Below are positions 2,958 to 58,300 of a stretch of DNA of 64,000 bases, one piece after another. Below the pieces are notes generated by a model. It searched no databases. It had not been told where the DNA came from and was given only the letters and a program-made list of their open reading frames with translations. Source of the DNA: Oopsacas minuta (lineage: Eukaryota; Animalia; Porifera); the NCBI GenBank assembly GCA_024704765.1, contig JAKMXF010000012.1:1-64000 (forward strand), read 5' to 3'. A program made the position numbers and the translations under genes. Position 1 is the first letter of the stretch. Every line of letters starts with the position of its first letter.

Positions 2958-4121
2958 ATGGCCACCAAATACTCAGAAGAAATTCCTACCAACCCTTTCG
3001 AACTAACGGAACAGCTGATCCATTCCACCTTCGAGAAGATTATTAGGATTGCGATAGAAAGGAAAGATCAGCTGCTTGTCCAGCTGTTCGATATGAAGCA
3101 GGACTATCTAAGAAAGGAGAATACAAGAAAGAAACGAGTAGCAGACCTGGAGAAGCTAATCCAACAAGTCATGGAAACTAGCATTCAGCAAAATCCAATC
3201 CTCAAAGTCCAAGAGAGGCAACTAAACAACTTGGAAGAAGAAAAGATGAAATACAGTGAGCAAACACCTATCCCAATCCCTTCCTTCAATACTGAGGGTG
3301 TAGACTCTCTCCTAGAACAGCTGGAGAAGTTGGGGTCTATTCAGGCTATAGCTGGACTATACAGAAACAAGACTGAGCCAATCAGAAGGATAGGAAAATG
3401 TGGAAGAAAGAAAGGAGAGCTGAATTACCCTAATGGACTAGCTCTAGATGGAGATAAGATCTATATAGCAGATACATACAATAATAGAATACAGATCTTC
3501 TCTACAGAAGGTAAGTTCATTCATGAATTTGGTAAAGGGGAGCTAAAGTATCCATCCGGTATAGCATTATATAAGGAATGGGTGTTTATAAGTGATTCGA
3601 TACTTGGTGCTATATTTAAATTCTCTAAAATAAATTACAAATTAATTAAGAGTGTTAAGGGAGTTGTTAGTCACCCTTATGGTCTAACAACTGACACAAA
3701 TGTAGAAGTGTTAGTTGCAGATTTCGGTAATAATATAATTGCAGTATTCAGCTCTGATTTAGAATATATTAGAGAAATAGGAAAAGACAAACTTATAAAA
3801 CCGTGTGACGTCAAAATAAATAATAATAATATATTTGTAGCAGACAATAATGAGATTAATAATATACACATATTCTCTAAATCAGGTGATTTATTGAAAA
3901 GTTTCATAAAATTAGAAAATGGAAGATTCACTTTTCTGTGTTTTGATTTGTATAATAATATTATTATTAGCGATTATTGGGGAAATTCAATTAATATATT
4001 TACTGAAGATGGACAGCTGATACACAAAATTACATGTAATAATCCTACAGGAATTATTGTTAATAATAACTTTGATATTATTTGTGCTAATGATGGTGAT
4101 AATGTAATAAATATATATTAA
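2958..4121 (+). CDS. NHL-repeat six-blade beta-propeller protein with N-terminal coiled coil (copy 1), intronless
   Basis: 387-aa ORF; helical N-terminal ~130 aa then repeats such as [29 protein letters not shown]; no RING or B-box seen. Confidence 0.92.
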   Translation: MATKYSEEIPTNPFELTEQLIHSTFEKIIRIAIERKDQLLVQLFDMKQDYLRKENTRKKRVADLEKLIQQVMETSIQQNPILKVQERQLNNLEEEKMKYSEQTPIPIPSFNTEGVDSLLEQLEKLGSIQAIAGLYRNKTEPIRRIGKCGRKKGELNYPNGLALDGDKIYIADTYNNRIQIFSTEGKFIHEFGKGELKYPSGIALYKEWVFISDSILGAIFKFSKINYKLIKSVKGVVSHPYGLTTDTNVEVLVADFGNNIIAVFSSDLEYIREIGKDKLIKPCDVKINNNNIFVADNNEINNIHIFSKSGDLLKSFIKLENGRFTFLCFDLYNNIIISDYWGNSINIFTEDGQLIHKITCNNPTGIIVNNNFDIICANDGDNVINIY

Positions 4122-4441
4122 TTATATTGTTGTTGTTATTTACTTGTTTGTTTATTATTATTAAATATTTCTCTCACTTTATCACATTTTATTTATAAGA
4201 ATCTTAATGAAGGTGTCAACCAACAATTTTCCTATGTAATCTATTTAGAACTGTTTTTTTGTGGGCCCAATCCTGTCATTTGTGGTCCGTCAATGGGACA
4301 GGTGGTCTAACGTCTGAACAATCCATTAGGATTTGTCATAATTCACACCTGCCACTAGTTGTTAATCTTCGCTGAGGTGTTATAAATACATCACATAATA
4401 AGTGTTCATAATTACAATAATTAGACATTCCAACAGCTCAA

Positions 4442-4927
4442 ATGCTTCACTGCGTAATTCTAATAATAATAATTAAAGTATCATATATTCACACCTCATC
4501 CTACGAGGATACCTTTAACTCTATTTTCAATTGGGAGCCTTACTCTCCTTCATTTGAGATTCCCAGTCCATTACCGAGACCTGTTATGATATTATTTTAC
4601 GGGGAAAAGTGTTTTGCAAGCAGTCGATTCAAAAAAGAGCTAATCGCCTCTCCAGAGCTCATAGGGCTCAGTCAGGAATTCACTATGGTTAAAATAGAGA
4701 GGGGACATGACCCTGGTATAGGGAGGTACAGAAAAAATGGTGTTTACTACCCTAGGGTGTATTTTTTAAGCACCACGGGAGCTCTCCTTCAAGGTGTGAA
4801 CGGTCCTGACCCAGAGTACAAGTTCTATTTTGCTACAGCTGATGAATTGCTAGATGCGATGAAAACTGTTTTAGAATTAAACAAACAACAACAAGATTTG
4901 TTTGATGTATTCCACGAAGAATTTTAG
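4442..4927 (+). CDS. ER thioredoxin-fold protein, TXNDC12(ERp18)/AGR family, intronless
   Basis: Signal peptide; PVMILFYGEKCFAS (CxxS), GVYYPRVYFL and YKFYFATADELL align with TXNDC12 PLMVIIHKSWCGAC/GGYIPRILFL/YKYFY; C-terminal HEEF resembles KDEL-type ER retrieval signals. Confidence 0.85.
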   Translation: MLHCVILIIIIKVSYIHTSSYEDTFNSIFNWEPYSPSFEIPSPLPRPVMILFYGEKCFASSRFKKELIASPELIGLSQEFTMVKIERGHDPGIGRYRKNGVYYPRVYFLSTTGALLQGVNGPDPEYKFYFATADELLDAMKTVLELNKQQQDLFDVFHEEF

Positions 4928-5142
4928 AATTTTAGTTCTCATCATTTATCACATTATTAGCTCAAAATTTTCATAATTAGAAATCACCATGACAACCAAA
5001 AGAATGTTTAATTAGAGTACTCTACTATCTGTATGATTAATCTAATTAACTATTAATAATTGTTCTATTAATAGAACACTTGTCTACTATATAAATTGTA
5101 TTCATAGATTCCTTAGTTACATATTAGTGTAGTTGGAATTCA

Positions 5143-6483: not shown

Positions 6484-6660
6484 TTTGTTATTGTTTACTA
6501 GTGATTATTTAGTTGAATTTAGTTAGTGTTTATTCACTCAAAACTTTGCAAATATTTATTTTTTCACAGCCTAGGCCAGTTGGGACTTTGGCCTAGGAGA
6601 TGACTGCTCCAGTATCCATGGTCCATATAATAGTTCTATTTATAGTATCAATTAGTTAGC

Positions 6661-7224
6661 ATGCCTAAGGATTCTTCCCGCCCTAAGCGAGCTCTGGGTC
6701 CGTATAACTTCTTCGTAAAAGAACGTAGACAGCATTACAAGGACAATAATCTAGCGATTAATTTCTCAGATTTCTCAAAAGAATGTAGTAACATTTGGAA
6801 AAGCATGGATGATACGGATAAATCAAAATTCCAGAAAAGCGTCGAGGCAGATAAGTTAAGATATGAGAAGGAAATGGCGCGCTATACCCCTGAGCCTGTA
6901 CAGAAAGGGGGGAGGAAGAAGAAGACCAAGGATCCGAACCAGCCCAAGCGACCCCTCTCTGGATTTTTCTTCTTCTGTCAGAAAATAAGACCGACATTCC
7001 GCGGGCAGGATCCCAAGGCCTCTGTAGGAGAGCTGGCCAAGAAATTAGGCGCCGAATGGCAGCAGTATTCCCAGGAAGAAAAGGCGCCATATGAGGATAT
7101 GGCGCGTAAAGATAAGAAAAGATATGAGCGGGAAATGGAAATATTCAAAAGTGATGGAAAAAAGGGCGCCAATTCTGCTGAACCAATCGACGATGATAGT
7201 TCCAATTCTGATGATAAGGATTAG
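6661..7224 (+). CDS. HMGB-type high mobility group protein, two HMG boxes, intronless
   Basis: PKRALGPYNFFVKERR...FSDFSKECSNIW and DPNQPKRPLSGFFFFCQKIRP...VGELAKKLGAEW; short acidic tail. Confidence 0.93.
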   Translation: MPKDSSRPKRALGPYNFFVKERRQHYKDNNLAINFSDFSKECSNIWKSMDDTDKSKFQKSVEADKLRYEKEMARYTPEPVQKGGRKKKTKDPNQPKRPLSGFFFFCQKIRPTFRGQDPKASVGELAKKLGAEWQQYSQEEKAPYEDMARKDKKRYEREMEIFKSDGKKGANSAEPIDDDSSNSDDKD

Positions 7225-10136: not shown

Positions 10137-10371
10137 TGGTATATACTGGTTGCTAGGGTAGCCTTTTGGTCAGAAGTGTGAATATATCACATATAGAATT
10201 GGTAATTATTGTCCCTCACAAGTAACTACTCCCTATCCCATTTCTAAATATAAACAAGCTATCGCATATAATAAGGGTGATCTCTCAATAATATATAAAC
10301 AAAAACAAACTTGTATATACACAAGAACATAATCAAATAAACAACAATAATAATAATAATAATAATCATCA

Positions 10372-13300: not shown

Positions 13301-16300
13301 ACAAACAAGCAAGTAAACAAACAAATAAAGATGCAAACAAGGAAGCCAGCAAGCAAATAAGCAAATAAACAAGTAATCAACCAAACAAGCAAGTAAACAA
13401 ATGACTCACGTATGTACAATCATCTGCACAACAAAAATAGCTAAATGAACTATCCATGAAGATATAATGTAGTATTTGAACGATCTGTCTTGAACATTAT
13501 GATACTATAAGAGGATAAATAACAATAAAACAACAAACAAACAAACAAACAAACAAACAAACAAACAAACCTTCATTTCTAATCCTAAATCTTTAAAAAT
13601 AAGGAAATACGGATTCAAATCTGAGTGAGTATCTACTATACTGAAAAGAGCTCGCCTACAAACAAACAAACAAACAAACAAACAAACAATATATTTATAT
13701 AAACAACATACTTGTCCTCTTTTGTATCAGTTTGTTGTTGTTTACTTCTCCTCTTAAGAGACTCTTCTATTTGCTCTTTAATCTGTTTATCTATTGTATC
13801 CTCATTTTCTGTTTGTATAGAATCCATAGTAGCTCTCCTCTCTGTCATCCTCAAATTATTTTCCTAATACAGGAGTATAATAATATGGAACTATAGATAT
13901 AGGGGTACAAATCAGACCGATGGGACATAACTGGGACAGTTGCATATTTGTATGACACTATAAAGACACAAACCATAGTCCATTAATATGATATACTTAC
14001 TTGCTGTCCTCTAACCATATCAATTGATTGCTTGCCGAATGGAATAGCGTTAGATTTGAACCTTGATCTAGATAATCTGGGACTCCTCTAAACAAACAAA
14101 CAAACAAACAAACAAATTAACAAGCGGTTCCCCGTGGACCCCAGAGGTTGTGAACCACTGAACTAACCAACCAAACACTTACAATTCTTTGTTCCTCAGG
14201 TTTGATAAAATATGTTTGAACATTCTTTCTCTTAAGAAATAAATCTCTTTCAATTCCATTACCATTATACATCTTAAAGTCGGTCATGAGATTCCTCTTA
14301 GTAGATTCTGATATGTGTACCCATCTATTGAGATATTAGTGCTATTATATAAACACTCTATTCCACAGAGGATAGGAACTATAAAATAACACCATCGCTA
14401 TACAGTGTAACCTCCACTAACGGGGCTATTGACGCCGATAATTGCTACCCCGTTTCTGCCAAGTCCCACTTTTGTCGAGGTTCATATTTATGGCACAGGA
14501 TTGCTGTGGGACTTGAAATTCCGTTCCCACGGCAACCGGGTATGGGACTATGAATTCGCTCTATAGTTTCACTCCGTTTCTAGAAGTCCCCGTTTCCACA
14601 GCAACCATTTGTGGATGCTACACTGAATCAGGTACCTACAATGATATTCAATTGGTATTATTCCAGTGTGCTAAAAATAGAACTTACCCTGCTACGCCAC
14701 CAGACTCCATATGATTAGCTATAGTGACGTCAGTAGACCAGATATCAAATTGGAATTTCTTAGAACCTAATATTCCTGAGAACACATGACCTGAGTGTAC
14801 TCCTACTCTCATATTTAGATCTGGGGACGTGCTCCTCTGGAATCTCCTAAAATGGAGATGTGTAAACAAGTAAATAAGTAAACAAACTACATATCAACAA
14901 ACAAATATTTATACAAACATAAACACACAAACAACTCACTTGATAGTATTACACATATCTAATCCCATATTTACACAATTATCAGCATGATTAGAGATAG
15001 GACCAGGAACCCCTGACACACAGTAGTAGCAATCCCCAAGGATCTTGATACGGAGACAGTTATTTAACTAAATATAAACACAAATAAAATATACATATAT
15101 TGACAAGTTGACACCTTTATCATGGCAACAGTGTAGGTACAAAGTTATGAGAAAAGAACCAAGAGTAAAATATGATAAATTAAGAGAATTTAAAGAATTG
15201 GAACTAATAGCTAATACAGCATAGCAACTAATTCTATACAAGGAATGTGGCATGTTATAACTGGAACTAATTTACATATTGAAAGCTATCTGACCTAACA
15301 CATCCGTAATTCTGTGAGACAATAGTCTCGTGGTAGAGTTTAAGGAAATGTGATTAGTTGTAACTTTCTATTTCACCACTTAACACCTGAATAATTAATG
15401 TATGAATTTGTATAAATACAGTCTGTAAATGAGAATAATCATAAACAGAACAACAAACAAATGGCCACCCAATACTCAGAAGAAATTCCTATCAACCATT
15501 TCGAACAAGCGGAACAGAAGATCCATTCCACCTTCGAGAAGATTATTAGGATTGCGACAGAGAGGAAAGATCAGCTGCTTGTCCAGCTGTTCGATATCAA
15601 GCAGGACTATCTAAGAAAGGAGAATACAAGAAAGAAACAATTCGCAGAACTGGAGAAGATGATCAGACAATTAATGGAAACTAGCATTCAACAGAATGAC
15701 ATAGTAAAACTCCAAGAAGATCAAATAAAGAATTGGAAAAAGGAACAACAGAAATACGAAATAGAAACACCTATCCAAATCCCTTTCTTCAATACTGAGG
15801 GTCTAGACTCACTCCTAGAACAGCTGGAGAAGTTGGGGTCTATTCAGGATATAGCTGTACCCTACAGAAACAAGACTGAGCCAATCAGAAGGATAGGAAA
15901 ACCTGGAAGTGAGAAAGGAGAGCTGAATTGCCCTCTTGGACTAGCTCTAGATGGAGATAAGATCTATATAGCAGATACAAACAATAATAGAATACAGATC
16001 TTCTCTACAGAAGGTAAGTTCATTCAAGAATTTGGTAAAGGGGAGCTAGATACTCCATGGGGTATAGCATTATATAAGGAATGGGTGTTTATAAGTGATT
16101 GGGGACTTGATGCTATATTTAAATTCTCTAAAACAAATTACAAATTAATTAAAAGTGTTAAGGAAAGTGTTAATGTCCCTCTTGGTCTAACAACTGACAC
16201 AAATGGAGAAGTGTTAGTTGCAGATTATTATAATAATAGAATTGTAATATTCAGCTCTGATTTAGAATATATTAGAGAAATAGGAAAAGACAAACTTAGA

Positions 16301-19300
16301 AAACCGAATGACGTCAAAATAAATAATAATAATATATTTGTAGCAGACAATAATGAGATTAATAATATACACATATTCTCTAAATCAGGTGATTTATTGA
16401 AAAGTTTCATAACATTAGAAAAAGGAAGAGGATTCATTTTTCTGTGTTTTGATTTGTATAATAATATTATTATTAGCGATTATTTCGGAAAATCAATTAA
16501 TATATTTACTGAAGATGGACAGCTGATACACAAAATTAAATGTAATTATCCTACAGGAATTATTGTTAATAATAACTTTGATATTATTTGTGTTAGTTTG
16601 AGTGATAAAGTAATAAATATATATTAATTATATTGTTGTTATTTACTTGTTTGTTTATTATTATTAAATTATCATATTCACACTTGTTTAATATAATAAA
16701 GAACTCTTTGGGTCACTGATTAATCAAGCAAGTTAGTTACGATTACATCCACTTAATCGGGTCAAAATGTTATGTGGTCCCGTGGTGACACTATTAAGAG
16801 GTGTTAAGTCAATTCTCTGATATATTAATAACTCACCTTTGCTAATTCATCAAACTCTCCGAATAATCTATTCAAAAGTTCCACTAGCTCTTTAGCATCT
16901 ATGGAGGAGGATAGCTTCGTGAACCCACACACATCAGCAAACAATATACTATACAAATCAAACTGTAACTATGCCACAATTATGAATATCATAAGGAGTG
17001 TTATAAGTGGCAGATGAGGATAGGACATAGCAGGGGAATTGGATTGTTATGTTTACATAACTGGACCCCCTATACCAATTTCAACCCCCTCTAGTGTACT
17101 CTAATACAAATAATAAGATCCTTTCAATCACCATGGCTCCAGGCATGAAATTATGATAATCTCACCTGACAGATTCCATATGATCCACATGTAACACCTT
17201 GAAGTTAGAATTCTGTTCTGTAGCGTCTGTTATTCCAAAATTCTTATCACTCATATCATATTTAAGATAGAAGTATTTTGGCATGATTGATAGAAGCAGA
17301 TATTTCTAAAAATATATTGGAGAAATAAATCAGCTGATATGGAACATAAATGGGTACAATTGAGGGGTACATAGGTCCCAGTGCTATAAACATTTTCATA
17401 TTTATAATTTCTTTAGAAATTAATCATATTTTAACACCTTGGCGTATAATAAACAAATCACAGGGGATAGGGAGCTTTAAGCTAGGTGTCGATTCAGCAA
17501 CCATGAAGGCCGTGAAGCAAGGGCCAGTCCCAGAAATTCCTTGACAACACATGATACAGGTCCAGAATTGGACCAATGGTAACAACAACATAGTCAACTC
17601 CCATTACATCTGAGCTCAAGGTATAATGGATGTAATATTTGTTACTTTGACGGTTTGGGACAATATTTGTAGAATATAAGGGGGTAATTCTAGTTAAGAG
17701 GAATTGTCTATACTAACAATCTTCTGATATTGATTATTAATAAGAATAGAAGCCTTAGCAGAATCTCTGATAGTAAGGAATGTTCTTCTAGCTGATAGTT
17801 CATACAGAGTATTGTGATAGAATCCGTTAAGATTAGCAGCAAGTAATATGAAAAATATAGCGAATATCTCTATGTAAATCTATAGGAAATATATTAAATG
17901 GAAACTCATAATGTTAAGACAGGATTTCCAGGGATAGTAGCCAGGGTGATTATTCATATTTTAACACCCTTGGACGGGGGGGACATATATATAATCACAT
18001 ACTACATGGATCTATTCACCAACTCCCTAACGTGCTCCTGTGAAGTGTTATGTCCCAGTTTCCATGGTTACCTCATTGGTATTAGGCTACACCCCTACTA
18101 GTATCCGATGAAAATCATATTATTATTAGTTCCAATTGGAAGTAACTCACCTCCTTCTCAACATGAGGTTTAAATGATTCATAAACAATAATAATTAGTA
18201 TCATATGGAATATGGATAGAATTGTAGCTAATGAAAGTGACCAGAAGAGAGGAACAGGAATTAGAGTATACGTCATGAATATGATGAATTGTGTGAACCC
18301 TACTTCGTCATCTGGGACTCTGTACGGGTTAATCTATAAATAGAAGTGTAAATATTCAATAAGCTTCTGGTTAAGTGATTATAGGGGAGTTCGCCTATTT
18401 GATGTGTTTTGTAAGAAATGGCTGCTCATTAGATAATTAACCATGGATGGTAGATTTCGTACATTTATCTTGTATACAAATTCCCTTCCAAACAAGCTAG
18501 GACTGCCTTAGAATAATCTAGAACAATAACTTACAGAAAAGAAAGAATAGTTGATAACACATAAAATAAGCCATAACAACAGAGCATAAGCTCTCCTCCT
18601 CTTGGTAGGAGGATGTCTGTCAAATTGCCAAACTATAGCTAGTGTCACGAATATTATCAGAGAAATGCTATGTATAATCAATCTGGGTAGAGCTCCATAC
18701 TCATAGAATACGAAATCTCTCTACAAGAAAAAGTGTTAAAGTATAATAGAATAGGCGCCAAAGCTAGGAGGACAAGGACCCATGGTCACATATATATCTT
18801 GAGTGTTAATGTGATAACATAATTATCACATTTCTAAGCGATGTGTAAACAAATACACAATTATCTACAGTCAGGGGTGCATATTGAACCAAGCAAGTAC
18901 CCAATAAAATGGACAATTAGAGAGGAACCACAATATTTTGGTTCCATAGGGGTCACAATAAGCACCCCTGACTATATACATTTACCGGATGTGGAGTTAA
19001 CGGATGATCATGACCCTCTCTAAACTGTATATCACAGACAGAATTATTTGGGTGTATATTTTCCTCATAGCATATAGTAGATCGACAAGTGAAGTTATTG
19101 AATTGTTCTGTTGTGATAGGATTAGTAATTAATGTATACTAAAAATAGAATAAATAGTGTCAACAATAAAATAAACCATAATTTCCCGTTATATCTAAGC
19201 TCAAGGGACCGTGATGATTACTTCGATATAACCGACGGAATATGTGTTACTTTGACGGTTTGGGGCCTTATTTGTACAATTTATAAGCGGGTATTTGACA

Positions 19301-24448: not shown

Positions 24449-27400
24449 ATGTCGAAGGAGCAAATCGAAATAGATATACACGAGGTAGGTACATTTATTG
24501 ACGCATTCTGCCCCCTCTCCCTTTGGATTTGATCTCTAAACACACCCCGGAGGTGAGGTTATTAAGAGGTGTCAAATCCTGACTGGGGGGGTGTGAGAAT
24601 CTGTATAATTATTGTTGTTATTTAGTGTCCCTTGTGTATGGAACCGTTTGAATTGGATGATCTCAATTTCTATCCATGTGCCTGTGAATACCAAATATGT
24701 CGATTCTGTTGGCACAGAATAAAAACAGATGAAAGTGGATTATGTCCCGCTTGTAGACAGGTTAGTTGTGTCACTATTTTCACACTTGCGACACATTTTT
24801 GACACGTTATTCCAATAAGGAACTATGGATGAATATTCTTATTTGGTAACTATGGAATGATGATTGGAATTTGTTATTTCCAATGTTTCTTGTTATTATA
24901 TTTATCAAAGGTGTTTGTTGTTATTGTTATTTAGCCATATACAGAGAATCCAGCAGAATACACACCTCTTACACAAGAACAGTATGTTTACTGCTAATGT
25001 ATTATTGTTTATTTATTTGTTTATTTGTTTGTTTTTGATTGAATTTATTGACGAACTTGAAAGAACTAATAACTCGTAATTTATTATCTTTGTGGAACTA
25101 TCAGAATTGACGATTTATCCCTTTTATGTATACTCTTAGTCTATATACATATTATCACACCTTTCTGAGTTGTAAATTTATTGATTTATCTGGGAAAGAA
25201 TTCCCGATTGTTGTTATTATTTGTTTGTTTGTAGAATAACAAAATTGAAACAAAAGAAGAAAACAAAAAGTCACGAAAAGAAACAAAAACAAATTGAAAA
25301 TCGAAAAAATTTATCAGAAGTTAGGTAAACAAATTTGTAAACAAATTTGTGTTTATTATTCCTCTGAATAGAGTCTCATCGGGACAAGGACATTTTGACC
25401 CGATTAACCGTATTTATTTATTTGTTTGTTTGTCGTTTAGAGTTGTACAAAAGAATTTAGTATTTGTAGTCGGATTATCGAAGAGATTAGCAGAAGCAGA
25501 GGTGAGAAAATTAATCATATTATTCATACAAACAATACTATTATTGGAATACAGTTGTGTATACACACACACATTATATTTCCTCTCCTGAGGGTACATG
25601 GTAACATGTACCCTTTGGTGTGATCACTGACGACAGCAACACGGGTCCACAGGATCTCAGATTGGTCCACAAAATGTGTATATTTTCACACTTTTTGTTA
25701 CTTTTCTAGGTTTTAAAAAGACCAGAATATTTTGGTAAATTTGGTAAAATACAGAAAATTGTTATAAACACAAACACAGTATATCACGGACCTCAAGGTC
25801 CTAGTGTGAGTGCATATGTTACTTATCAGAAGACAGAGGTAAGATTTGTTAATATGTGAATTAGTCAAACCTGCTTAACAGATAGCAGCCACATTTTAAG
25901 CCCCTCCGTGGGGAGAAACCTCTCTAACGGACACTTTTGCCAATCCTTTTGACGGCTGTTATAAACAAGTTTGACTGTATTCATTATTTTAAAAGGGACC
26001 AAGGATATCCATTTATAATCGTTACATGTAGTCAACTCCAGTTATATAGAAATACTCGCTTGTATCGAAGTGTGAATTGTACATATGTGTTCCCAAACCG
26101 TCAAAGTACATATATTCCATTGCATCGGGTATATCTAAGTAATTATGACGGTTCCTTGAGCTTAGATATTACAGGAATTGACTGTGGAATTTATCACATA
26201 CAAATATTTAGGATGCTTCTAAAGCAATACAATCAGTTAACAATGCTAAAGTAGATGGCAGAATTCTCAAGTAAGTTATAATTAGGTTATTAATATAGGT
26301 AACACCATTCTGTGGTGACAGTTGTCACCAAAGGATGTACCTTCCTGGTTGATTGGGTCAGGATTCATTGTCCCGAAGTGTCCCTCATAGTCCAATCTTT
26401 TGGTTAGAGTGTCGATTATGCCAAAGAATGTAACTAGAGATAAGAGATAATATCCATGGTCCATTCAGTGATTATAGATTACTAATGTTTATCTGTGTTG
26501 TGTGCTATATCTTATTATTCATTTATTTGTTTTTTGTTTACTTATTTTAGAGTATCTTTTGGGACAACAAAATATTGTAGTAATTTCTTGAAAGGTGCTT
26601 CTTGTCCAAAAACAGTGAGTTGTTGTTGTTGTTGTTGTTGTTGTTGTTGCATGTGTATTTATGTTTTAAGCTGTTTAGAATATATCCAATTTTAATCTCA
26701 CTTATAAACACACAATAAATATATGAACAAACAAACAAACAAATTAGAAAGTTTGTAACACCTGTTCAGGATTTTCTGATACAACATAGATAATTCCCTT
26801 CAAAGAAATACAAACACCTTTTGGCTTTATAAATTCACCTTTCAACAAACCATGACTCCCAAAGGTGTGAACAATCTCGCCATCTTGTGTGAATATTTTA
26901 ACATTATCATGTTTTCTATTGCTAATAATAATATTCCCGGTATGATCCAAACAGAAGAAATCCGCGTTAAATATCATACATTCCTTTTCATCACCTTGGG
27001 AAATAATCGATTTGGTAAATTTCCCTTCTCTCGACATAAAATGTATACAATTTGAACTATGATCCAGAACTAACACTTCATCTGTCGTGAATTTTATATC
27101 TTTTGGCAGTTTCAATTTGTCTTTCCCTAAACATATTTTGAATTTTAACTCTTCTGTGAATACTGTTATTCTATTGTTTAAAATATCGGCGACATATATG
27201 TCTCCATTTGTGTCAATTGCTAGTCCTCCTGGCCACTTAATTCTACCCTCCTCAATGCCAAAACCTCCGACTCTACCTACCATCTCATGTTTGTATTTAC
27301 AAAACTTGATAACAAAACAATGCCAAATATCGGTAACATACACAAACTCATCCGTTACAGCTATACCCCAGGGTCTTACCAACACCCCAACACCAATTTC

Positions 27401-28409
27401 TGTCACAAATTGACCCTTCAGTGTCAGGACTTGTACCCTTCTGTTCCTGTGGTCACAGACATAAATATTTATCTTCTTTTCATCCAAAGCAATCCCTAAA
27501 GCTGTTTCAAATTGTCCCTGTTTCACACCTCTTGGACATACAGTTAAAATTGGCGCCTTTTTAGATACATAATCTATTTCTTTGGCGCCTAAATCCAGAC
27601 GCGCCATTGTATCTTCAACTTTGTATAATTTCCTTCTGACCGCCATATTAATTAGAATTACACCAAGAAATACAATTGGTCAATTATATAGAGATTTTGT
27701 TGCTAATTTTAGATACGTTTCTATGGCAACGAGCGCCTACTTTAAAAATATGCATATTTTATTTCAATTAATTGTTTACGTCATATTTGTCAACAACAAC
27801 AAAAATTAATTTTGTTTATATTATAGGATTGTATGTATTTACATGAATTGGGTGAAGATGAAGCTAGTTTCACAAAAGAAGATATGGCACAGGGGTAAGC
27901 CACTTATACCGACACGATTAATCATATTTTCACACCTTTTATTTACTTATTTGTTTAGTAAACATCAGTTATACGAAACAGCAACTTTATCACAAGCAGT
28001 TGTTATTAGGGAAGTTGTTTACAAGGAACCTCCTGTCAGAAGGTTGTTTGTTTATTTGTTTGTTTATTTGTTTATTTGTTTATTTATATATTTGTATTCT
28101 TTAGAACAACACCTACACAACCTCCCAAACTCAAAGAACCACCAAAAGTACTAACTGCACACATACTGACATAATTAGATTATCATTTGTTTACTTGTTT
28201 AGATTACTACACCACCAATATCACAATCAGCTCTACCACCATCTGCCTCTTGGTGAGTATCCTTTGTTCTGTCCTATTGGCCAATAAACTATATTTGTGT
28301 ATTTACACGTATTTATCATATGATTAATCATATTATCACACCTTTTGGAACTATTTCTAAATTCTCCTAGAGATTTGCTTCAGGGGTAAACAGGGACGTA
28401 TAATTCGAA

Positions 28410-28440
<31 letters not shown>

Positions 28441-41035: not shown

Positions 41036-44000
41036 ATGTCTACATGGCGTAACACAGCAAGTTCTAGCACAGGCGTGAAAAACGGAAGTAAACCTGTTGA
41101 TGATGATGATTGGGAGACTGATCCTGATTTTGTTAATGACGTCACAGAGGAGGAGAGCAGATGGGGAAGTAAGACTGTCGAGGGGTCTGGTCGTGTAGGT
41201 GTTGTGAATGTTAGAGATTTAGCTGAAGGTGTGAAACAGGACGATATTAAGGTGAAGGAACAATTCCAACATTCCTCACAGAAAGACGCAGCTAAAGGAT
41301 TTGGAGGTTAATATTTCTGATCAACCTCACTCACTCGTAGACTGAGGTGTTTAAATTTGTATCAAATTTATTATTATTTACTGTTGATTAGGTAAATACG
41401 GAGTACAGAAGGATAGGATGGATAAGTCAGCTGTTGGACATGACTATCAAGCTGACCTCTCTAAACACGTTTCTCAAACTGATGCAGCTAAAGGATTTGG
41501 AGGTAATGAATACAATTGGACCATGTATCTCTGGGGAACATGTTCCAAATATGTCAACTCCTGTTATATAGAAATACCCGCTCATATCGAAGTGTTAAAC
41601 TGTACATGTATGGTCCCAAACCTTCAAAGTAACAAATATCCCATCTGCTATATCTAGTACTTATCACGGTCCCTTCAGATTAGATATAACAGGAGTTTAC
41701 TGTATCTTATGTCCCCCGTACAAGGGTGTTAAAAGTATATTCATATGATTATTCTGTTCTTGTATAGGTAAATACGGAGTACAGAAGGACAGGATGGATA
41801 AGTCAGCTGTTGGACATGACTATCAATCTGACCTATCTAAACACGAATCACAGACGGACGCAGCTAAAGGATTTGGCGGGAAGTGAGTTGTTATATTTTA
41901 AACGAAGGGAGGAAGTGATAACAATAATGGTTTCAGTTCCAATTACATGTGCGGGGTGTTAAATATCATGCGCTATACTTTATATTTTAGATACGGAGTA
42001 CAGAAGGACAGGATGGATAAGTCAGCTGTAGGACATGATTATCAATCTGACCTCTCTAAACACGAATCACAAACAGACGCAGCTAAAGGATTTGGAGGTT
42101 AGTTCTTATTGAAACTAAGGTATAATGCTCTGATTTAAGAGGCCACTGAATAATCGGTCCCGAAGGAATACCCTCACATCTAATTGGCCCAAAGTGGAAA
42201 GGTGTGAAAATATGTATAATCGGTTTCTCTAGGTAAATACGGAGTACAGAAGGACAGGATGGATAAGTCAGCTGTAGGACATGACTATCAATCTGACCTA
42301 TCAGCTCATGAGTCTCAGACAGACCACTCTAAAGGATTTGGAGGTTAGTTCTTATAGAAACTAAGTGTATAACACTCTACTTAATCTGGTCATAGGTTAG
42401 TCGTCTCTTCGCTTATTTGGCCGAATACACTTGGATCAAATTGGCCCAATAATAATTGTAAGCAGGGTTTCATCCAGGTTCTCAGGGTTATACGCCTAAA
42501 AATGGGTTCTAATTCATTTCATAAGCTTAGGCTATAAATTTTTGCATTATAATCTAGGAGTTTCTGCCCCTAGAGAGAAATTTCATACCTTGACTGTAAG
42601 GTGTGGAAATATGATTAATCGGTTCCTGTCTAGGTAAATACGGAGTACAGAAGGACAGGATGGATAAGTCAGCTGTAGGACATGATTACCAATCTGACCT
42701 CTCAGCTCATGAGTCACAGACAGATCACTCTAAAGGATTTGGAGGTTAGTTCAAATTGGAACTAAGTAAAGATTCTTTTCTAACGAAATTCCTCTGTTTA
42801 TATGTATAACAAACTATACACACAGGTGTGAAAATATGATTAATCTGTTCTTGTATAGGTAAATACGGAGTACAGAAGGACAGGATGGATAAGTCAGCTG
42901 TAGGACATGATTATCAATCAGACCTATCTAAACACGAATCACAGACAGACGCAGCTAAAGGGTTTGGTGGCAAGTGAGTAAATATATGATTAATCATATT
43001 GTAACACCTCTGTGTAGCATGTGGCTATTCCTGTAGTTCCCATAATCTCTAGAAAACTCCCACATATCATGTAGTTATGCATACATTATAGATATGGTGT
43101 AGAGAAGGATAGGATGGATAGATCAGCTGTTGGACACGATTACCAATCAGACCTGTCCGCTCATTCATCACAGACAGACCACTCTAAGGGTTTCGGAGGG
43201 CGGTACGGGGTAGAGAAGGATAGGATGGACAGATCAGCTGGAAGCTTTTCTGATATGACAGATGTTAAATCTGTTCCCAAACCAGAGGTTGTTGTTGTGC
43301 TGACTATGATACTTACAGGACAGTGAGGACACATTTTTATCTGACACAATACGCCACTTTTAAACACGTGTTTACAACTAGCAAAATATTTTCATACAAT
43401 TACAGTCAACTCTTGTTTTATCTAACACAAATATATAGAAATTCCCGCTCATATCGAAGTGTGAAGTTGTACACATTAATTATTATTATTATTATTATTA
43501 TTATTTACGTTTATAGGTTCGAACAAAACCCAAAGGCGCCAAGTCAGGTTTATTCGCTAAATTCGAACAAATGTCAGTAGAGCAAGACAGTACTACTCAG
43601 CAGGGAGCAAATGAAGCGAAGGAGAGGAGAAGACTCCAAGAAGCAGAAGAGGCCGCTAGACAAAGAGAGATTAATGCTACCTTACCTGTTGATGATGATA
43701 CAGAAGAAATTAGTGTTGATGAACCAAAGATTGTTAGGTAAATACAAACAAACAAATAACAAATAAACAATTAAGCTAGTTTGCTGTAACCTCGTAAATA
43801 CAAACAGCAACAGATTATGAACGAATTTCCCGGAGTAATACCTGTCCACTTTTCTCATTACATTTCTTTGATAATAAACAAATAAACAAACAAACAAACA
43901 AATAATGTGTATTTCTAGACCACTTCCATCTAAATTAATTCAAATGGCAACACCTCCCAAAATGGCAGATATGCAATCACAAGAACCTGAGGAACCAATA

Positions 44001-47000
44001 CGAAGACCTCCTTCTATAGTTCCAATTTCTGTTCCAGGTCAGAGAATGGAACCGGAACCAATTCCAGATAGTGAAGTACTTTATGACACCTCTGAAGACG
44101 CATACGAGGTTAGAATTCAAACTTACTTCCTTAAGTACAGCCATCTTAATTCTGATACCATATGACATCCGTTTACAACCTGAACCATGGAGGACAGCAA
44201 GTTGTCCACTGGACCTCAAATATGGGAGGATACACATAATGTGTTATAATTAGTATAGGGGTACACGTGTGGAAACGGTTAGGAATGGTAATTTATAGAA
44301 AAGGACAAGTGTGAATATAATAATTTAATAAATAATAAACAAACAAGTAAATAACAACAATAATATAATTAATATATATTTATTACTTTATCACTCAAAC
44401 TAGCACAAATAATATCAAAGTTATTATTAACAATTATTCCTGAAGGTTTATTACATGTAATATTGTGTATCAGCTGTCCATCTTCAGTAAATATATTAAT
44501 TGAATTTCCCTTATTATCGCTAATAATAATATTATTACACAAATCAAAACACAGAAAAATGAAATTTATTCCATTTTCTAATTTTATGAAACTTTTCAAT
44601 AAATCACCTGATTTAGAGAATATGTGTATATTATTAATCTTATTATTGTCTGCTACAAATATATTATTATTATTTATTTTGACGTCATGCGGTTCTATAA
44701 GTTTGTCTTTTCCTATTTCTCTAATATATTCTAAATCAGAGCTGAATACTGCAATTCTATTATTACCCAAATCTGCAACTAACACTTCTCCATTTGTGTC
44801 AGTTGTTAGACCAAAAGGGACATTAACACTTCTCTTAACACTCTTAATTAATTTGTAATTTGTTTTAGAGAATTTAAATATAGCACTAAGTGTCGAATCA
44901 CTTATAAACACCCATTCCTTATTTAATGCTATACTGTGTGGATCCTCTAGCTCCCCTTTACCAAATTCATGAATGAACTTACCTTCTGTAGAGAAGATCT
45001 GTATTCTATTATTGCCTACATCTGCTATATAGATCTTATCTCCATCTAGAGCTAGTCCATTAGGGTAATACAGCTCTCCTTTCTCACTTCCAGGTTTTCC
45101 TATCCTTCTGATTGGCTCAGTCTTGTTTCTGTAGACTTGTTGTACAGCTATATCCTGAATAGACCCCAACTTCTCCAGCTGTTCTAGGAGAGAGTCTAGA
45201 CCCTCAGGGTAGAAGGAAGGGATTGGGATAGGTGTTTCTATTTCGTATTTCTTTTGTTCCTTTTTCCAATTCTTTATTTGATCTTCTTGGAACTTTACTA
45301 CTTCATTCTGTTGAATGCTAGTTTCCATTAATTGTCTGATCATCTTCTCCAGTTCTGCGAATTGTTTCTTTCTCGTATTCTCCTTTCTTAGATAGTCCTG
45401 CTTCATATCGAACAGCTGGACAAGCAGCTGATCTCTCCTCTCTGTCGCAATCCGAATTATCTTCTCGAAGGTGGAATGGATCAGCTGTTCCGTTAGTTCG
45501 AAATGGTTGGTAGAAATTTCTTCTGAGTATTTGGTGGCCATTTGTTTGTTGTTCTGTTTATGATTATTCTCATTTATACAGACTGTATTTATACAAATTC
45601 ATACATTAATTATTCAGGTGTTAAGTGATGAAATAGAAACTTACAACTAATCACATTTCCTTAAACTCTACCACGAGACTATTGTCTCACAGAATTACGG
45701 ATGTGTTAGGTCAGATAGCTTTCAATATGTAAATTAGTTCCAGTTATAACTAGCCACATTCCTTGTATAGAATTAGTTGCTATGCTGTATTAGCTATTAG
45801 TTCCAATTTGTGTAGAATTTAATAATCTAAGAAGTTTGCATTTTAAGTAATATTTCGTTGTTTATTATTATTTATTCGTGTTTGTTACTAGTAAACAATC
45901 CCTTGATTACTCACATATACAATTTCCGGTGGCTATACTTCCTGTGACGTAATATCTGTTTGCTATTACATGTGTTGTCAGTATTGTTATCGTTTCTTAA
46001 ACTGTACTTTAATATTCTATAATACTTATTGTTTCAATTCATTCTATAATCTTAAAGAATGGAAATTTCTGTTCGTATTAGCGACGGTGTATGTATGTTC
46101 ACCAATTTACTCTTTTAGACTCCAATAGAAACTGTCCAAGCCCCAGCCCCAGTATCACAACCCCGACTGCCGTACAACCCCCCTCTCCCTCCTATACCGA
46201 CACAACAACCAATTGATGACCCAGAGGCTCTGTACGAAGAACCACCAGTAACCCAAGAGTAAGATTAGTTATTTACACACAGTGTAACCTCTATATACGG
46301 AGTCCCAGAGACGCCGAAAATGTTACACCGTATGTGGAGGTTACACTATACACATAACTCCTGTATTATTTCTTAATGTAAGGTGTTAAGTATTAGTGCT
46401 GCTACTTTCAGTTCGTATTGCGAATTCTTTCACGATTTCCTTAGTTACCATATGTTATTAAAATATTTACAGTTATATATAAATACCCGCTTATATTCAA
46501 GTGTGAAAATTGTACTAAAATAAGTAACAAATATTCCATCGGTATATTAACTAATTATTACGGTCCCTTGAGATTTGGTATAACAGGAGTTTACTGTTTT
46601 CGTTGCAACTTTGTTTATGTTTACTTTCTATGTGTCAGATATCCAAATGAACAAACATATTTTGAGCCAACAGCTGACAACGAAGAGGCTACATATGAAT
46701 CCGTTCCTGAGCCACAACAAACGATACAACAACCTGATGACATAGCTAGTGGTAGTACTACTGCAAGAGCAGTTTTTGATTATCAGGTTTGATTACTAAT
46801 ATTTATGGATTATTAATAAACAAATAACATAAACAACAAATAAACAACAGATAAACAACAGATAAACAGGCGAATAAACAAATACACAAGCAAACAGACA
46901 AACAAACAATTACTAACACAAATACCATAAACAACAGACGAACAGGCAAACACACAAATACACAAACAAATAAACAAACAGACAAACAAGTACATAAATA

Positions 47001-47456: not shown

Positions 47457-50400
47457 ATGAACTTCGCAAGAGCCTCGCATTCCTTTAAAGCAGAACAAGA
47501 CTATGAACTCACTCTATCACAAAATGACGTCATCGCTGCCGTTGAAATTGTAGATGAAAGTTGGTGTAAAGGTATCCTAGTTACCAACGGGGCCATTGGG
47601 TATGTACCTGTCGCATTCGTTGAATTCTTTCAACCTGAATCCGTTGTTGCAACTGATGAATTGGACACGGGACAGCTGGATGATTTGAATTTCTCCATCG
47701 GCGATATTATCTACAGATTGTCTCGTGTGGATGAGAATTGGTCGATTGGGTTTACGAATGGTAGAACTGGTCTCTATCCTAATTTATATGTAGCACCCAG
47801 AACGAATAAAGGTTAGCGAATATTTGTATGAAATTCTATATACAGAGCTGAGCTCTTGTAGAGCTTTTATAGCGCATTCTATCGGTGTTAATCATTGTTA
47901 TTAAGATCAGTTGCTTATAACTTGCTGCCTTCGGTTCGCTTCCCACGCCAGCATTTCCCTTTTCGACTGTAGATTACCTAATATGGAATAACTCAACTTG
48001 ATTCTTCAAATTTTCGTGATTTTAATGTACGTAACACTAAACTGTGCTCTAGTAGAGCTGAGCTATGAATATATTATCTCTATCTGTATATTGTCCTGCT
48101 TTTTCTGAGTGCCAAATCCTGTATAATTTCGATAGGTGATATCAGCCGCCAAGAATCCCGCTATCCCGCTATTACTTATTATTACCTCAGAAAGGTGTTA
48201 AGTATATAACAAATTCTCTATTTTAGGTCTGGATAGCCCAAAAGATAAACTCTCCCCATACGCTAATTCACAGATGTTCGCACCGGGACCTACCGACCCG
48301 GTGTATGCCAACTTCCCAGTCACTAATGAACACACGAAAGACTCTAACCTATCCCAATTCGACCACTTAGAGCCACTATCACCTGAATTCGACCATCTAG
48401 ACGACACCGGAGATATGTTGAGACAATTGGAGAAGGAATTAGAATTGAATGAAGCGAGATTAAAGAGTTTTGATATTAAACCAAGCGAGGAGATCACGAC
48501 AAGTCAGGTGATTTCTGAATCACAAATTCGTAAACAAGATATAAAGTTGAATTTGGAATTGGATTCTGTCATTGGAAATTTGGAGGAGAATTTGGGAGAT
48601 TTTGACAATAGACTGGTTACACCTGTATATGCCAACGGTCCACAGACTCACATATATAATCTGGACAAGCCGAAGCCCCTTGAGTACAATAATATCGAGA
48701 CGACTGTCCCTAGCAACGAAAAATCTGAGAAGAATGCGATTAAAACTGAACTTAAATTAGAGAAGGCATTAGGAAAATTGGAGAAGAAATATCAACCATC
48801 TAGTAAACTTGATGTTTACGAGGGAAACAAAAGTAAACAAGGACAAACAAACAAACCACAACCAGCTGTTAAACGAAAACTTCCCAAAACACCTGAAAAG
48901 GCTTTTTCACAGCCAAATTTAATTATGTCAAAAATTGCAATACAAAATTCTAGAAAACTTCCGAACGCAAAGCCGCACATCCCTTCCCCCTTCACTAAGC
49001 CCATTAAAGTGTTACCTACTTTGGACCAACATGACCCCATGGGGTCATCTGGTGGTCCTATCCCAAAGAGAATAGCTCCACCTCCTCCAGCCAATCAGAA
49101 TCCTCTCTCTGTTGATGTTACTCAATCACTGTGTGATATGAGACAGAGAACCAATCAAAATGCTGAGTGTAAGTTATACATATGTATATTGTAAACAAAC
49201 AAACAAACAAACAATATTATCATATAGATCCCCCGAGTGAGTACAGCTTCAAAACAGACTCCTTTTGCACCCTAACCCCCTCCTTAATAGAGGAACAAAT
49301 AAGACTCTCTCCTCCTCTAACACCTCCCAATCACTACCCTCAACCCTTCAGAAGGGTCAAGAGTAGCAACGAAGATATTAACCTATTTCCTAACATTCCA
49401 CGACAGTCTCCTGTTGCTAAGAAGAGTGATTTTAGTCCAAATATCAAAGTTAGTTAAGAATGTTTATTTCTTTGTTTGTTTATTTGTTTAGTTATTTACT
49501 TGTTTAGAAAGTTAATACACATAAGAAGGTAACAATAAGGAGCAGAAGTCTTGGTTCATGTTCCTCAGATGACTCCAGGAAATCTCCTATTGACTTGGAG
49601 TCTATAGAAGATCCATTCACAGGGGTAATTATAAATGAGAATATCTTATACGCTTACACAGCAACCAGTATATCCTTTAGGAATGTTATTTTATTGTACA
49701 CAGTGTAACTTTCATAAACATGCTACCCCTGTCCCCCGTACCGTTTGTGGAGGTTCACAATATTTCATACAACTTTCTAGGGAGAGCAGCGTTCCTCAAG
49801 AAGACGGACTGTCAACGGTCTAACCTCCTTCTCATCTCCTGTTAGCTCCACCAAACAGAGACACTTCCCTCAATCAGAGATAGACCTTAACGAATACCCC
49901 GGTGTTATTGAGCTACAGCAACAGATTAATGAAATAGAACGGAAACTAGAAGTATGTTTTGACACCTATTAATTATATATATGTACACATCGACCCGAAA
50001 AGTAGTCCTCATTCGATGATCTCCTCCCTCACTGAGGGGTGTAGCCAAATACCAATGAGGTAACCATGGAAACTGGGACATAACACGTCACTGAATCACG
50101 TTAGGGAGTCGGTGAATATATATTATGTCCCCGTTCAAAGGTGTTAAAATATGAATAATCACCCCTTAATATATTTGTTTACTTGTTTTGTAGGTTGAAG
50201 AAAAGATGCATTCTTGTTTACAAACAATGCTACAGGTAAACAACTAAACAGCAAACATATATACACTTTGTTTACATGTTTATTTCTTTGTTTCTTTGTT
50301 ATTAGGTTGTAACAGGTTGTGACGCGGCTAAAGAAGAACAATTAGAAGTTCGACAAGTAGCCTGTGAACATGAAATACAAGAATTACAGAATAAACTTCA

Positions 50401-54939: not shown

Positions 54940-55360
54940 TTCTAGTTCCAATATATATGAGGTGTAATTCTTGCATTTACTTTTGAGATCTTTTAACTGT
55001 CCAGTACATATCTTATTCTTTTATCAGCTTTTAATTAAACTAATATTTTTATATAAATATTTTGACACCTTTCTATGTCACAGGGGACAGGCAGGTCCTC
55101 TGAGAGGAGGACAACGTGGGTCCTTTGGCCTGGACCTCAAAATCAATCAATCAATATATTTGGGGGAGATTTACTCATTTTAGGAAGATAATAAATCTCC
55201 AGGGCCTCTCCATCCAGTCAGAGGCCCTGCATCCAGGAGCATGGATTTGACACCTCCAAAAGACCCCCGGGCGCAAGAGGTCAAATCCTATGCTTGGTTA
55301 TTTATATGAATAAGAGAATATGCTATTTTAATCATCAACAACAACAACAACAACACATTT

Positions 55361-58300
55361 TCACCAAATGAATGGTGATCGTTCTCTAATTAACCTAACA
55401 CCGCTATTAATCCATTCTTCTCTCTTTATCCATACCTCACTGAATATGTCGAGTGATGCCACTATTCTGCCACCTGTCCAGCTTAGTTTTGATATGTCAC
55501 CTTCTCGTGGAGGTGTGAAAATCTCAACTTGTAGCTTTTTTAGAGCAGAAGGCAAAGTTTCCTAAAATGTTCAAAGTAACATACAGTCAGCTCCTGTTAT
55601 ATCTAAGCTCAAGGGACCGTAATAATAATTTCCATGTAATCCGATGGAATATTTGTTACTTTGACGGTTTGGGACCATATTTGTACAATTCACACTTCGA
55701 GATAAGCAGGTATTTCTATATATCCATATTAGATATAACAGGAATTGACTAATATACCTTGAGTCTATTCTGCAGGAAACTTAAACTCTTTGGGAACTGA
55801 AACCCAGCTCCCGTTATAACTATATTCTTATATATTTTCTGTTTATTCTGTTCATTAGAACAGTTTATTGATAAATGTATTGCTTCTTCAATACTCAATA
55901 GTTTTGCTTTAGTATCTGCTCCACCAATAGATTTCGTGTTTAGAAGCTTGGTTATTAGTGGCAGCTGTAGTTCTGTTTCTTGCTCGTCAATATGCGTACC
56001 TACGGTATAAATACGAATATTTTATTTGTCAGTAGACTCTGCCTAATAGAACCACCGGGTAATCAGGTCACTTAGCCAGAAATGACCTATAGCCAGTGGT
56101 TCTCAAACCCCTGAAGACTCATACGAGGTTAGAATTCAAACTTATTTCCTTAAGTACAGCCATCTTAATTCTGATACCATATGACATCCGTTTACAACCT
56201 GAACCATGGAGGACAGCAAGTTGTCCACTGGACCTCAAATATGGGAGGATACACATAATGTGTTATAATTAGTATAGGGGTACACGTGTTGAAACGGTTA
56301 GGAATGTTAGTTTGTAGAAAAGGACAAGTGTGAATATAATAATTTAATAAATAATAAACAAACAAGTAAATAACAACAACAATAATATAATTAATATATA
56401 TTTATTACATTATCACTCAAACTAGCACAAATAATATCAAAGTTATTATTAACAATAATTCCTGTAGGTTTATTACATGTAATATTGTGTATCAGCTGTC
56501 CATCTTTAGTAAATATATTAATTGAATTTCCACAACAATCGCTAATAATAATATTATTATACAAATCAAAACACATATGAATATATCTTTCTCCATTTTC
56601 TAATTTTATGAAACTTTTCAATAAATCACCTGATTTAGAGAATATGTGTATATTATTAATCTCATTATTGTCTGCTACAAATATATTATTATTATTTATT
56701 TTGACGTCACGCGGATTTATAAGTTTGTCTTTTCCTATTTCTCTAATATATTTTAAATCAGAGCTGAATACTGCAATTATATTATTACGATAATCTGCAA
56801 CTAACACTTCTCCATTTGTGTCAGTTGTTAGACCAAAAGGGAAACTAACACCTTTCTTAACACTCTTAATTAATTTATAATTTATTTTAGAGAATTTATA
56901 TATAGCATTAAGTCCCCTATCACTTATAAACACCCATTCCTTATATAATGCTATACCGTATGGATGCCATAGCTCCCCTTTACCAAATTCATGAATGAAC
57001 TTACCCTCTGTAGAGAAGATCTGTATTCTAATATTGATTGTATCTGCTATATAGATCTTATCTCCATCTAGAGCTAGTCCATGAGGGTAATTCAGCTCTC
57101 CTTTCTCACTTCCAGGTTTTCCTATCCTTCTGATTGGCTCAATCTTGTTTCTGTATAGTCCAGCTATTTCCTGAATAGACCCCAACTTCTCCAGCTGTTC
57201 TAGGAGAGAGTCTAGACCCTCAGTATTGAAGGAAAGGATTGGGATAGGTGTTTCTATTTCGTATTTCTTTTGTTCTTTTTTCCAATTCTTTATTTGATCT
57301 TCTTGGAGCTTTACTACTTCATTCTGTTGAATGGTAGTTTCCATTAATTGTCTGATCATCTTCTCCAGGTCTGCTAATTGTTTCTTTCTTGTATTCTCCT
57401 TTCTTAGATGGTCCTGCTTCATATCGAACAGCTGGACAAGCAGCTGATCTTTCCTCTCTGTCGCAATCCGAATAATCTTCTCGAAGGTGGAATTGATCAG
57501 CTGTTCCGTTAGTTCGAAAGGGTTCATAGGAATTTCATCTGAGTATTTGGTGGCCATTTGTTTGTTAGTCTGTTTATGATTATTCTCATTTACAGACTGT
57601 ATTTATACAAATTCATACATTCATTATTCAGGTGTTAAGTGATGAAATAGAAACTTACAACTAATCACATTTCCTTAAACTCTACCACGAGACTATTGTC
57701 TCACAGAATTACGTATGTGTTAGATCAGATGGCTTTCAATATGTAAATTAGTTCCAGTTATAACTAGCCACATTCCTTGTATAGAATTAGTTGCTATGCT
57801 GTATTAGCTAACAGTTCCAATTTGTGTAGAATTTAATAATCTAAGAAGTTTGCATTTTAAGTAATATTTCGTTGTTTATTATTATTTATTCGTATTTGTT
57901 ACTAGTAAACAATCCCTAATTATTCACATATACAATTTCCGGTGGCTATACTTCCTGTGACGTAATATCTGTTTGCTATTACATGTGTTGTCAGCATTTT
58001 TATCGTTTCTTCAATTCTACTTTAATATTCTATAATACTTATTGTTTCAATTCATTCTATAATCTTAAAGAATGGAAATTTCTGTTCGTATTAGCGACGG
58101 TGTATGTATGTCACCAATTTACTCTTTTAGACTCCAATAGAGACTGTCCAAGCCCCAGCCCCAGCGTCACAACCCCCTCTCCCTCCTATACCGACACAGC
58201 AACCAATTGATGACCCAGAGGCTCTGTACGAAGAACCACCAGTAACCCAAGAGTAAGATTAGTTATTTCACACAGTGTAACCTCTATAAACGGAGTCCCA

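Follow-up and report, generated by a model that had tools for sequence, protein, structure and literature searches.

We analyzed a stretch of DNA from the glass sponge Oopsacas minuta (Hexactinellida; assembly GCA_024704765.1, contig JAKMXF010000012.1, positions 1 to 64,000; referred to as the window), which carries several genes encoding a coiled coil followed by an NHL propeller. Four intact intronless open reading frames (ORFs) of 387-390 amino acids (aa) were found, with a mutual protein identity of 81-86%. They are located where the initial annotation of this DNA had put them, at 2958-4121 and 15461-16627 on the plus strand (copies 1 and 2) and at 44369-45541 and 56391-57557 on the minus strand (copies 3 and 4). 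Copy 1 encodes 387 aa, with the NHL propeller at approximately 3384-4118. Copy 2 encodes 388 aa, with the coiled coil at aa 11-100 and the NHL propeller at aa 143-388 (15887-16624), and its protein provides the numbering of positions for the whole family. Copies 3 and 4 encode 390 and 388 aa, respectively.

The similarity extends beyond the coding sequence (CDS). The four copies have in common approximately 1.5 kb of DNA, alike at 91.5-93.9%, starting about 265-300 bp before the ATG and ending about 45-65 bp beyond the stop codon. These units occupy 2658..4166 (copy 1, plus strand), 15196..16687 (copy 2, plus), 44305..45808 (copy 3, minus) and 56324..57822 (copy 4, minus); for copy 1, blastn detected about 300 bp upstream and about 45 bp downstream common to the other copies. 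Across the 17 copies described below, conservation covers approximately 300 bp upstream and 60-90 bp downstream. Each copy is a self-contained intronless promoter-to-polyA unit of about 1.5 kb, composed of about 300 bp of promoter and 5' untranslated region, the ORF and a 3' end of about 60-90 bp. The units are dispersed among and within housekeeping genes, and copy 3 is antisense within the last intron of a cortactin-like gene. Copies 3 and 4 additionally belong to a shared block of 2.3 kb (44088-46380 and 56107-58374). Identity within this block is 96.5% for the 3' flank (284 bp), 94.3% for the 5' flank and 92.9% for the CDS, therefore the coding region is more diverged than its own flanks. 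The earlier remark that the left flanks of these two copies are far closer than their proteins agrees with these values, as protein identity is 85%.

Further, we assessed the size of the family. It comprises at least 38 protein entries of O. minuta, several of them partial, and 409 matches were obtained overall. The O. minuta entries are annotated, for example, as TRIM71-like or TRIM2, and these names rest on the NHL part only. A further 370 or so clusters, with 55-61% identity and in most cases a length of 389-391 aa, come from European Nucleotide Archive (ENA) assemblies of another glass sponge (ERZ25766962 and ERZ25072730). With nine additional O. minuta loci, the set of intact full-length CDS came to 17, window copies included; three loci of the other species contributed five comparable CDS. 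Truncated or interrupted members were also present (L002:4821-5480, 219 aa; L005:8282-9250, 322 aa; L001:15888-17055, a 359-aa model; here and below, L numbers denote added loci), and they indicate gene birth and death in the family.

All four window copies matched the Pfam NHL model PF01436 (E from 2e-12 to 1.9e-20, 47-72 bits with a cut-off of 20). No Pfam match to a RING, zinc finger, B-box or filamin domain was found in any of the four copies, and the first helix begins already at aa 11. The AlphaFold2 (AF2) model of copy 2, based on a 98-sequence alignment, has a long N-terminal helix (aa 11-75 and 82-100), followed by two short ones and by the six-bladed propeller at aa 143-388 (predicted local distance difference test, pLDDT, >90). 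The propeller has 23 strands in aa 158-387 and one more at aa 143-145, which corresponds to six four-stranded blades closed by the N-terminal strand. The closest PDB chains by sequence were the NHL domains of Thin/TRIM32, TRIM71/LIN-41, TRIM2/3, Mei-P26 and Brat (E from 1e-23 to 7e-34). Foldseek comparison with Thin, TRIM71, TRIM2/3, Mei-P26 and Brat gave template modelling (TM) scores of 0.79-0.84 by target (E from 6.5e-22 to 3e-16, root mean square deviation 2.2-3.1 A), and the scores were lower for NHL-2 (0.75) and for the filamin-NHL chains 6fpt/6fq3 (0.59-0.60). In architecture, the NHL propeller is C-terminal and preceded by a coiled coil, and the best PDB matches are all TRIM-NHL proteins. 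The N-terminal 135 aa were confined to this family, and their homologues carried only NHL; among them we found no RING, B-box, TIR or death-domain partner with the same coiled coil. In our reading the family is lineage-specific, occurs in hexactinellids and is derived from TRIM-NHL proteins, and it has neither RING nor B-box. Judging from the hydrophilic N-terminus, the proteins are presumably cytosolic. We also observed that aa 60-102 of the coiled coil (window approximately 15638-15766 in copy 2) occur as three haplotype blocks in the 17 copies, reshuffled relative to the propeller; the block of copy 1 is that of L006:10001-11167. The three blocks could be dimerisation classes.

The differences between the four copies are gathered in short motifs of the propeller. 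For copies 1-4, in this order, the motifs read NYPN/NCPL/YYPN/NYPH and DTY/DTN/DVG/DTI in blade 1, KYPS/DTPW/EDPH/WHPY and DSI/DWG/DST/DRG in blade 2, SHPY/NVPL/NVPF/SFPF and DFG/DYY/DLG/DYR in blade 3, IKPC/RKPN/IEPH/INPR in blade 4 and DYW/DYF/DNK/DCC in blade 5. All of these quartets, listed already in the initial annotation, were present in our alignment, together with the blade 2 codon TCC/TGG/CAC/TAC. In the propeller of the four copies nonsynonymous divergence (dN) was 0.091 and synonymous divergence (dS) was 0.024 (dN-dS 0.067, bootstrap 95% confidence interval 0.041-0.095). Pairwise Nei-Gojobori estimates gave dS of 0.009-0.037, dN of 0.083-0.098 and a dN/dS ratio (omega) of 2.4-10 for the propeller, while for the coiled-coil part pairwise omega was 0.5-1.2. 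The pattern of variation in the four copies is far beyond chance.

To the 17 CDS we applied self-written site models M0, M1a and M2a (F3x4, fixed IQ-TREE nucleotide topology, one scale factor). In the propeller M2a was favored over M1a with 2ΔlnL=434 and omega2=10.2 for 14% of codons, and in the N-terminal part the gain was 14.5. Thirty propeller sites had a posterior >0.9, namely 148, 156, 157, 159, 174, 176, 194, 197, 198, 200, 214-218, 235, 239, 241, 256, 257, 281, 283, 323-325, 328, 341, 342, 363 and 380. Since recombination, described below, inflates likelihood-ratio tests, we added tests that are free of a tree and of circular choice of sites. Column entropy in O. minuta and in the other species was correlated across the propeller (r=0.84). 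The 22 sites that are hypervariable in the other species alone had dN of 0.73 and dS of 0.19 in O. minuta (omega 3.9 vs 0.78 for the remaining propeller). In the opposite direction, the sites selected in O. minuta had omega of 1.72 in the five copies of the other species, vs 0.53 for other NHL codons. Pairwise diversity at the hypervariable codons was 0.50, 0.49 and 0.26 at codon positions 1, 2 and 3, which points to selection on the amino acid and not to a codon-blind mutator.

We wanted to know on which face of the propeller the selected sites are located. The top face of an NHL propeller is made by the b-c and d-a loops and is the RNA-binding face in Brat (PMC4015489), and the RNA pocket of LIN-41 is on the same upper face (PMC5908797). 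The initial annotation had described these loops as the RNA-binding top surface of both proteins, in agreement with the two papers. Faces were assigned from the strand topology of the AF2 model, as HMMER alignments to PDB chains were in mixed repeat registers. Selected residues were found at 25 of 71 positions of the top loops (b-c, d-a), at none of 45 positions of the bottom loops (a-b, c-d) and at 5 of 126 strand positions (Fisher's exact test, p=6e-11 for top loops vs the rest, p=9e-7 for top vs bottom loops). The five strand residues are all at top-proximal ends of a or c strands, so that none of the 30 sites maps to the bottom face. Selected sites were present in 11 of the 12 top loops. 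The exception is the b-c loop of blade 4, aa 296-302 (DNNEINN; window 16346-16366), which shows no variation in the O. minuta reference copies and almost none in the second species; it may serve as a fixed anchor beside variable determinants. Among the variable residues Tyr (5.4x), Trp (6.8x), Arg (3.7x) and His (2.7x) were enriched, and a composition rich in Tyr, Trp and Arg suits a protein or an RNA ligand.

The rest of the propeller is nearly invariant, including its synonymous sites, and we looked at how this uniformity is distributed along the gene and between the species. Synonymous divergence among the 17 copies was 0.095 in the propeller and 0.25 in the coiled coil; for the conserved flanks the value was about 0.34. 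Recombination was detected by a test of the pairwise homoplasy index (PHI) type, in which 0 of 1000 permutations reached the observed value, and four-gamete failures rose from 0.27 for sites less than 50 nt apart to 0.49 beyond 300 nt. Two loci are syntenic in both species. One of them is the HisPhos locus, with calpain, an ANM3 zinc finger gene, RPL29, UCH, HisPhos and NHL in conserved order, where dS of the neighbouring genes is saturated. The second is the cortactin intron: copy 3 is downstream of UBA1 and Fringe, and in L012 of the other species that intron contains three NHL copies. Despite these syntenic loci, all copies grouped by species in the tree with 100% support. Species-specific clades, syntenic loci and recombination together lead us to the view that the scaffold has most likely been homogenised by ectopic gene conversion.

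We also analyzed transcription. Four public runs from one sample contain the copy-2 sequence. Run X1 has GT..AG joints in the neighbouring genes and its depth collapses between genes; runs X2-X4 evenly cover intergenic DNA. From these joints, its spliced contigs and its depth pattern, X1 appears to behave as RNA-seq. Summed word depth in X1 was 150,000-580,000 over the copy-1 ORF, 2,600-20,000 over the adjacent Brix gene and 142 just beyond the 3' end of the unit; it climbs in the bin 2773-2969 and falls away after 4151. At the level of the family as a whole, this indicates transcription.

Taken together, the most likely explanation is that the scaffold is homogenised within each genome by ectopic gene conversion, with selection keeping or renewing the differences of the binding face. 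We assign a probability of roughly 80% to the reading that the window contains members of a coiled-coil/NHL family which evolves in concert, has a selected top face and serves as an intracellular recognition repertoire, the function being the part that we infer. The initial annotation had proposed a binding-specificity repertoire that diversifies on the ligand face, and this proposal is strongly supported by the site model, by the two cross-species tests and by the distribution of selected sites between top and bottom loops. Uniformity of the scaffold through recombination or gene conversion is the half of the mechanism that it had overlooked. Each paralog, probably as a coiled-coil dimer, would bind a different ligand by its top face. 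Gene conversion would hold the scaffold uniform, and selection would keep or renew the differences of the top face. The family would then act as an intracellular recognition repertoire whose opponents in a conflict would be viruses, transposons, microbes or non-self cytoplasm. Homology with Brat, LIN-41 and TRIM56 suggests that RNA may be bound, with repression or decay as the outcome; proteins are about equally likely ligands. An immune, antiviral or RNA-recognition role may reasonably be supposed.

Several points weigh against this reading. The likelihood-ratio test of the site model was performed on a single fixed nucleotide tree and is anticonservative given the recombination detected. Across the 17 copies the top loops carry a net charge between -3 and +8, which is not uniformly positive, in contrast to the electropositive top surface reported for RNA-binding TRIM-NHL domains (PMC4015489). 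Between 59 and 63% of the 31-mers of a copy occur in other paralogs, so that the X1 depth can be assigned to the family and does not tell which copies are transcribed. Synonymous divergence is approximately two times higher at the hypervariable codons (dS 0.19 vs 0.088; diversity at position 3 of 0.26 vs 0.076). Therefore part of the diversity possibly represents old variants shielded from conversion. This suggests persistence of such variants, comparable to that at peptide-binding sites of the major histocompatibility complex (MHC), and not only repeated new substitutions. Finally, L010 and L012 were drawn from two different ENA assemblies, which somewhat weakens the argument from synteny and clades. 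Parallel expansion of the family in each species from one founder locus also yields species-specific clades, and we regard it as a weaker alternative to homogenisation.

A different explanation is that the NHL unit is selfish, either as cargo of a transposable element or as such an element itself, and that its variable face results from conflict between element and host or between elements, for example of a toxin-antidote or drive-like kind. The units are indeed uniform, about 1.5 kb long, provided with their own regulatory DNA and scattered in introns and between housekeeping genes, and hAT, MULE, Tc3 and DUF4371 transposase fragments are present near several copies. Yet there is no transposase within the unit, and at the unit ends we found no convincing terminal inverted repeats, only short AT-rich matches. 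The two syntenic loci are shared with a species of saturated neighbour-gene dS, so these sites are ancient and not recent landings, and the duplication of copies 3 and 4 is a segmental copy of 2.3 kb that includes host DNA. We consider a mobile cassette improbable.

Two side observations concern the surroundings and the ends of the units. In both species transposase-related ORFs (DUF4371, hAT dimerisation, Mutator/MULE, Tc3 HTH) are situated a few kb from NHL copies (L002:1094-3208, L006:16162-17727, L003:6405-7172, L004:13267-13680, L009:9861-10388, L011:6585-7505), and TRAF/MATH and IBR genes are also found near NHL copies (L004:17033-18744, L009:3183-3854, L001:13353-14189). Almost at the ends of the copy-2 unit there is a 15-nt inverted pair, 93% complementary (15169-15183 and 16664-16678), with no equivalent at the other copies; it is unconvincing and may be due to chance in AT-rich DNA.

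Even less probable is targeted mutation in place of selection, that is, hypermutation of specific codons or templated replacement as in diversity-generating retroelements (DGRs) or by AID. It would suit the concentration of changes, many of them two- and three-base swaps, in very few codons of a near-invariant DNA scaffold, as well as the raised synonymous and third-position diversity at the same codons mentioned above. Against it, diversity at positions 1 and 2 of these codons is double that at position 3, which would not arise from a codon-blind mutator. Neither a reverse transcriptase nor a template repeat was found beside the copies, the neighbours being housekeeping genes. Moreover, the paralogs differ by germline-fixed changes, and variation falls in the same columns in the other species, which is separated by saturated dS. 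Ordinary divergence of paralogs under relaxed constraint, with loops that are merely tolerant, is the least probable explanation: loops generally evolve faster than strands and some members are truncated or fragmentary (the above L002 and L005 ORFs and several partial entries), but relaxed constraint cannot raise omega above 1, which was 3.9 at independently defined sites and about 10 in the site model, the bottom loops are equally exposed and have no selected residue, the top loop aa 296-302 is kept nearly invariant or invariant in both species, and 17 of the examined copies keep full-length ORFs. We therefore rejected both relaxed constraint and a codon-blind mutator on the basis of omega >1, the lack of selected sites in bottom loops and a diversity at codon position 3 that is half of that at the first two positions.

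The remaining content of the window was also examined. A fifth NHL ORF, overlooked by the initial annotation, is located at 26744..27646 on the minus strand and encodes 300 aa with no coiled coil. Its identity is about 35% with copies 1-4 and 44% with L011:13213-14208 of the other glass sponge, and it represents a separate, second and older NHL subfamily. By tblastn of L012 gene products, we located exons of the cortactin-like host gene of copy 3, with HS1 repeats, at 41036..44111 on the plus strand, and the SH3 exon of the same gene, which closes the intron containing copy 3, at 47457..47822 on the plus strand. Other large ORFs of the window belong to housekeeping genes, namely Brix, HMG-box, ubiquitin E1 UBA1, Fringe-like and ARL GTPases. 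In the public annotation the protein P0023 ('actin-related protein 8-like', 456 aa) is a fusion of actin-family exons with aa 1-310 of copy 4. The gene model appears to be chimeric, owing to the location of the NHL unit inside this actin-related gene. Copy 1 (2958-4121) is not among the annotated proteins listed. At 5137-5333 there is a sharp spike of depth in all four runs (7,000-37,000 vs approximately 100-500 in the vicinity), flanked by loose ends, and a 166-bp match, 81% identical, is present near copies 1 and 2 (approximately 5205-5347 and 17934-18097). The spike is probably a short dispersed repeat or a miniature inverted-repeat transposable element (MITE).

We compared the sponge family with known systems. 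Like the TRIM-NHL proteins Brat, LIN-41/TRIM71, TRIM2/3, Thin/TRIM32, Mei-P26 and TRIM56, it has a homologous six-bladed NHL propeller after a coiled coil; Brat also has no RING, and the ligand face of Brat and LIN-41 is made by the same b-c and d-a loops. Unlike them, the sponge proteins carry no RING, B-box or filamin domain, and they exist in dozens to hundreds of copies, in contrast to 3-5 conserved developmental regulators. The top face of the sponge proteins is hypervariable and not uniformly positive, whereas the tops of TRIM-NHL proteins are conserved within orthologues.

A second likeness is to the HET-E/HET-D/NWD NLRs of the fungus Podospora, whose WD40 propellers reportedly combine conservation at the DNA level, through recombination or concerted evolution, with diversifying selection at few positions of the interaction face. 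Both systems have a concertedly evolving propeller scaffold together with a diversified face, a cytosolic location and a shared cytoplasm (syncytium or heterokaryon). The fungal diversity reportedly lies between repeats within and between genes, with NACHT and effector domains attached; in the sponge the blades of one protein are dissimilar, the diversity is between whole-gene paralogs and there is no NACHT or effector domain. We entertain, as a tentative and rather doubtful extension, that the family could be a germline library of programmable intracellular binders in a syncytial animal, in which dozens to hundreds of NHL propellers would recognise one RNA (or protein) target each, of viral, transposon or foreign cytoplasmic origin. 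Conversion would shuffle the specificity loops and hold the scaffold constant, and the library would be an animal counterpart of fungal non-self recognition by propeller NLRs, based on an RNA-binding fold and with no known signalling domain.

A third comparison is with primate TRIM5/22 and fish finTRIM, which are also lineage-specific expansions derived from TRIM proteins, with positively selected loops in the C-terminal recognition domain, and have been read as antiviral (PMC3845644, PMC3137616). There the recognition domain is B30.2/SPRY and here it is NHL; the sponge family has no E3 module, and its dispersed copies share an apparently homogenised scaffold. By language-model features, the clusters closest to the protein were mollusc NHL and B-box-NHL expansions of the Atlas, which are large families of short invertebrate NHL proteins, some of them with a B-box; the scores of 0.91-0.92 are to be taken as a lead only.

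In the library searched we found no literature joining Oopsacas minuta with NHL, and the family is unmentioned in the genome papers of O. minuta and Aphrocallistes vastus, the latter of which describes an analogous expansion of single-exon AIG1 genes. When NHL was combined with diversifying selection or with hypervariability, we found only work on fungal WD40-NLRs (PMC4986451 and PMC12222747) and studies of TRIM B30.2. Expansions of NHL genes in invertebrates do exist, as the mollusc clusters of the Atlas show, but we found no report of the selection pattern observed here. We class the sponge genes as a diversified recognition family on an NHL propeller, with no E3 module, that evolves in concert.

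In summary, these results offer a clean case of dispersed paralogs that evolve in concert while one defined surface escapes homogenisation. NHL domains are able to recognise the sequence or the shape of RNA, and the family could therefore amount to a naturally occurring set of RNA-specificity variants on a fixed scaffold, of use for understanding and engineering of NHL-RNA recognition. Immunity of sponges is usually framed by NLRs, SRCRs and TLR-like genes. If the NHL propeller does serve as a hypervariable scaffold, it would be a new fold for this purpose beside Ig, leucine-rich repeats (LRR), B30.2 and WD40/ANK/TPR, in one of the earliest-branching animal lineages.

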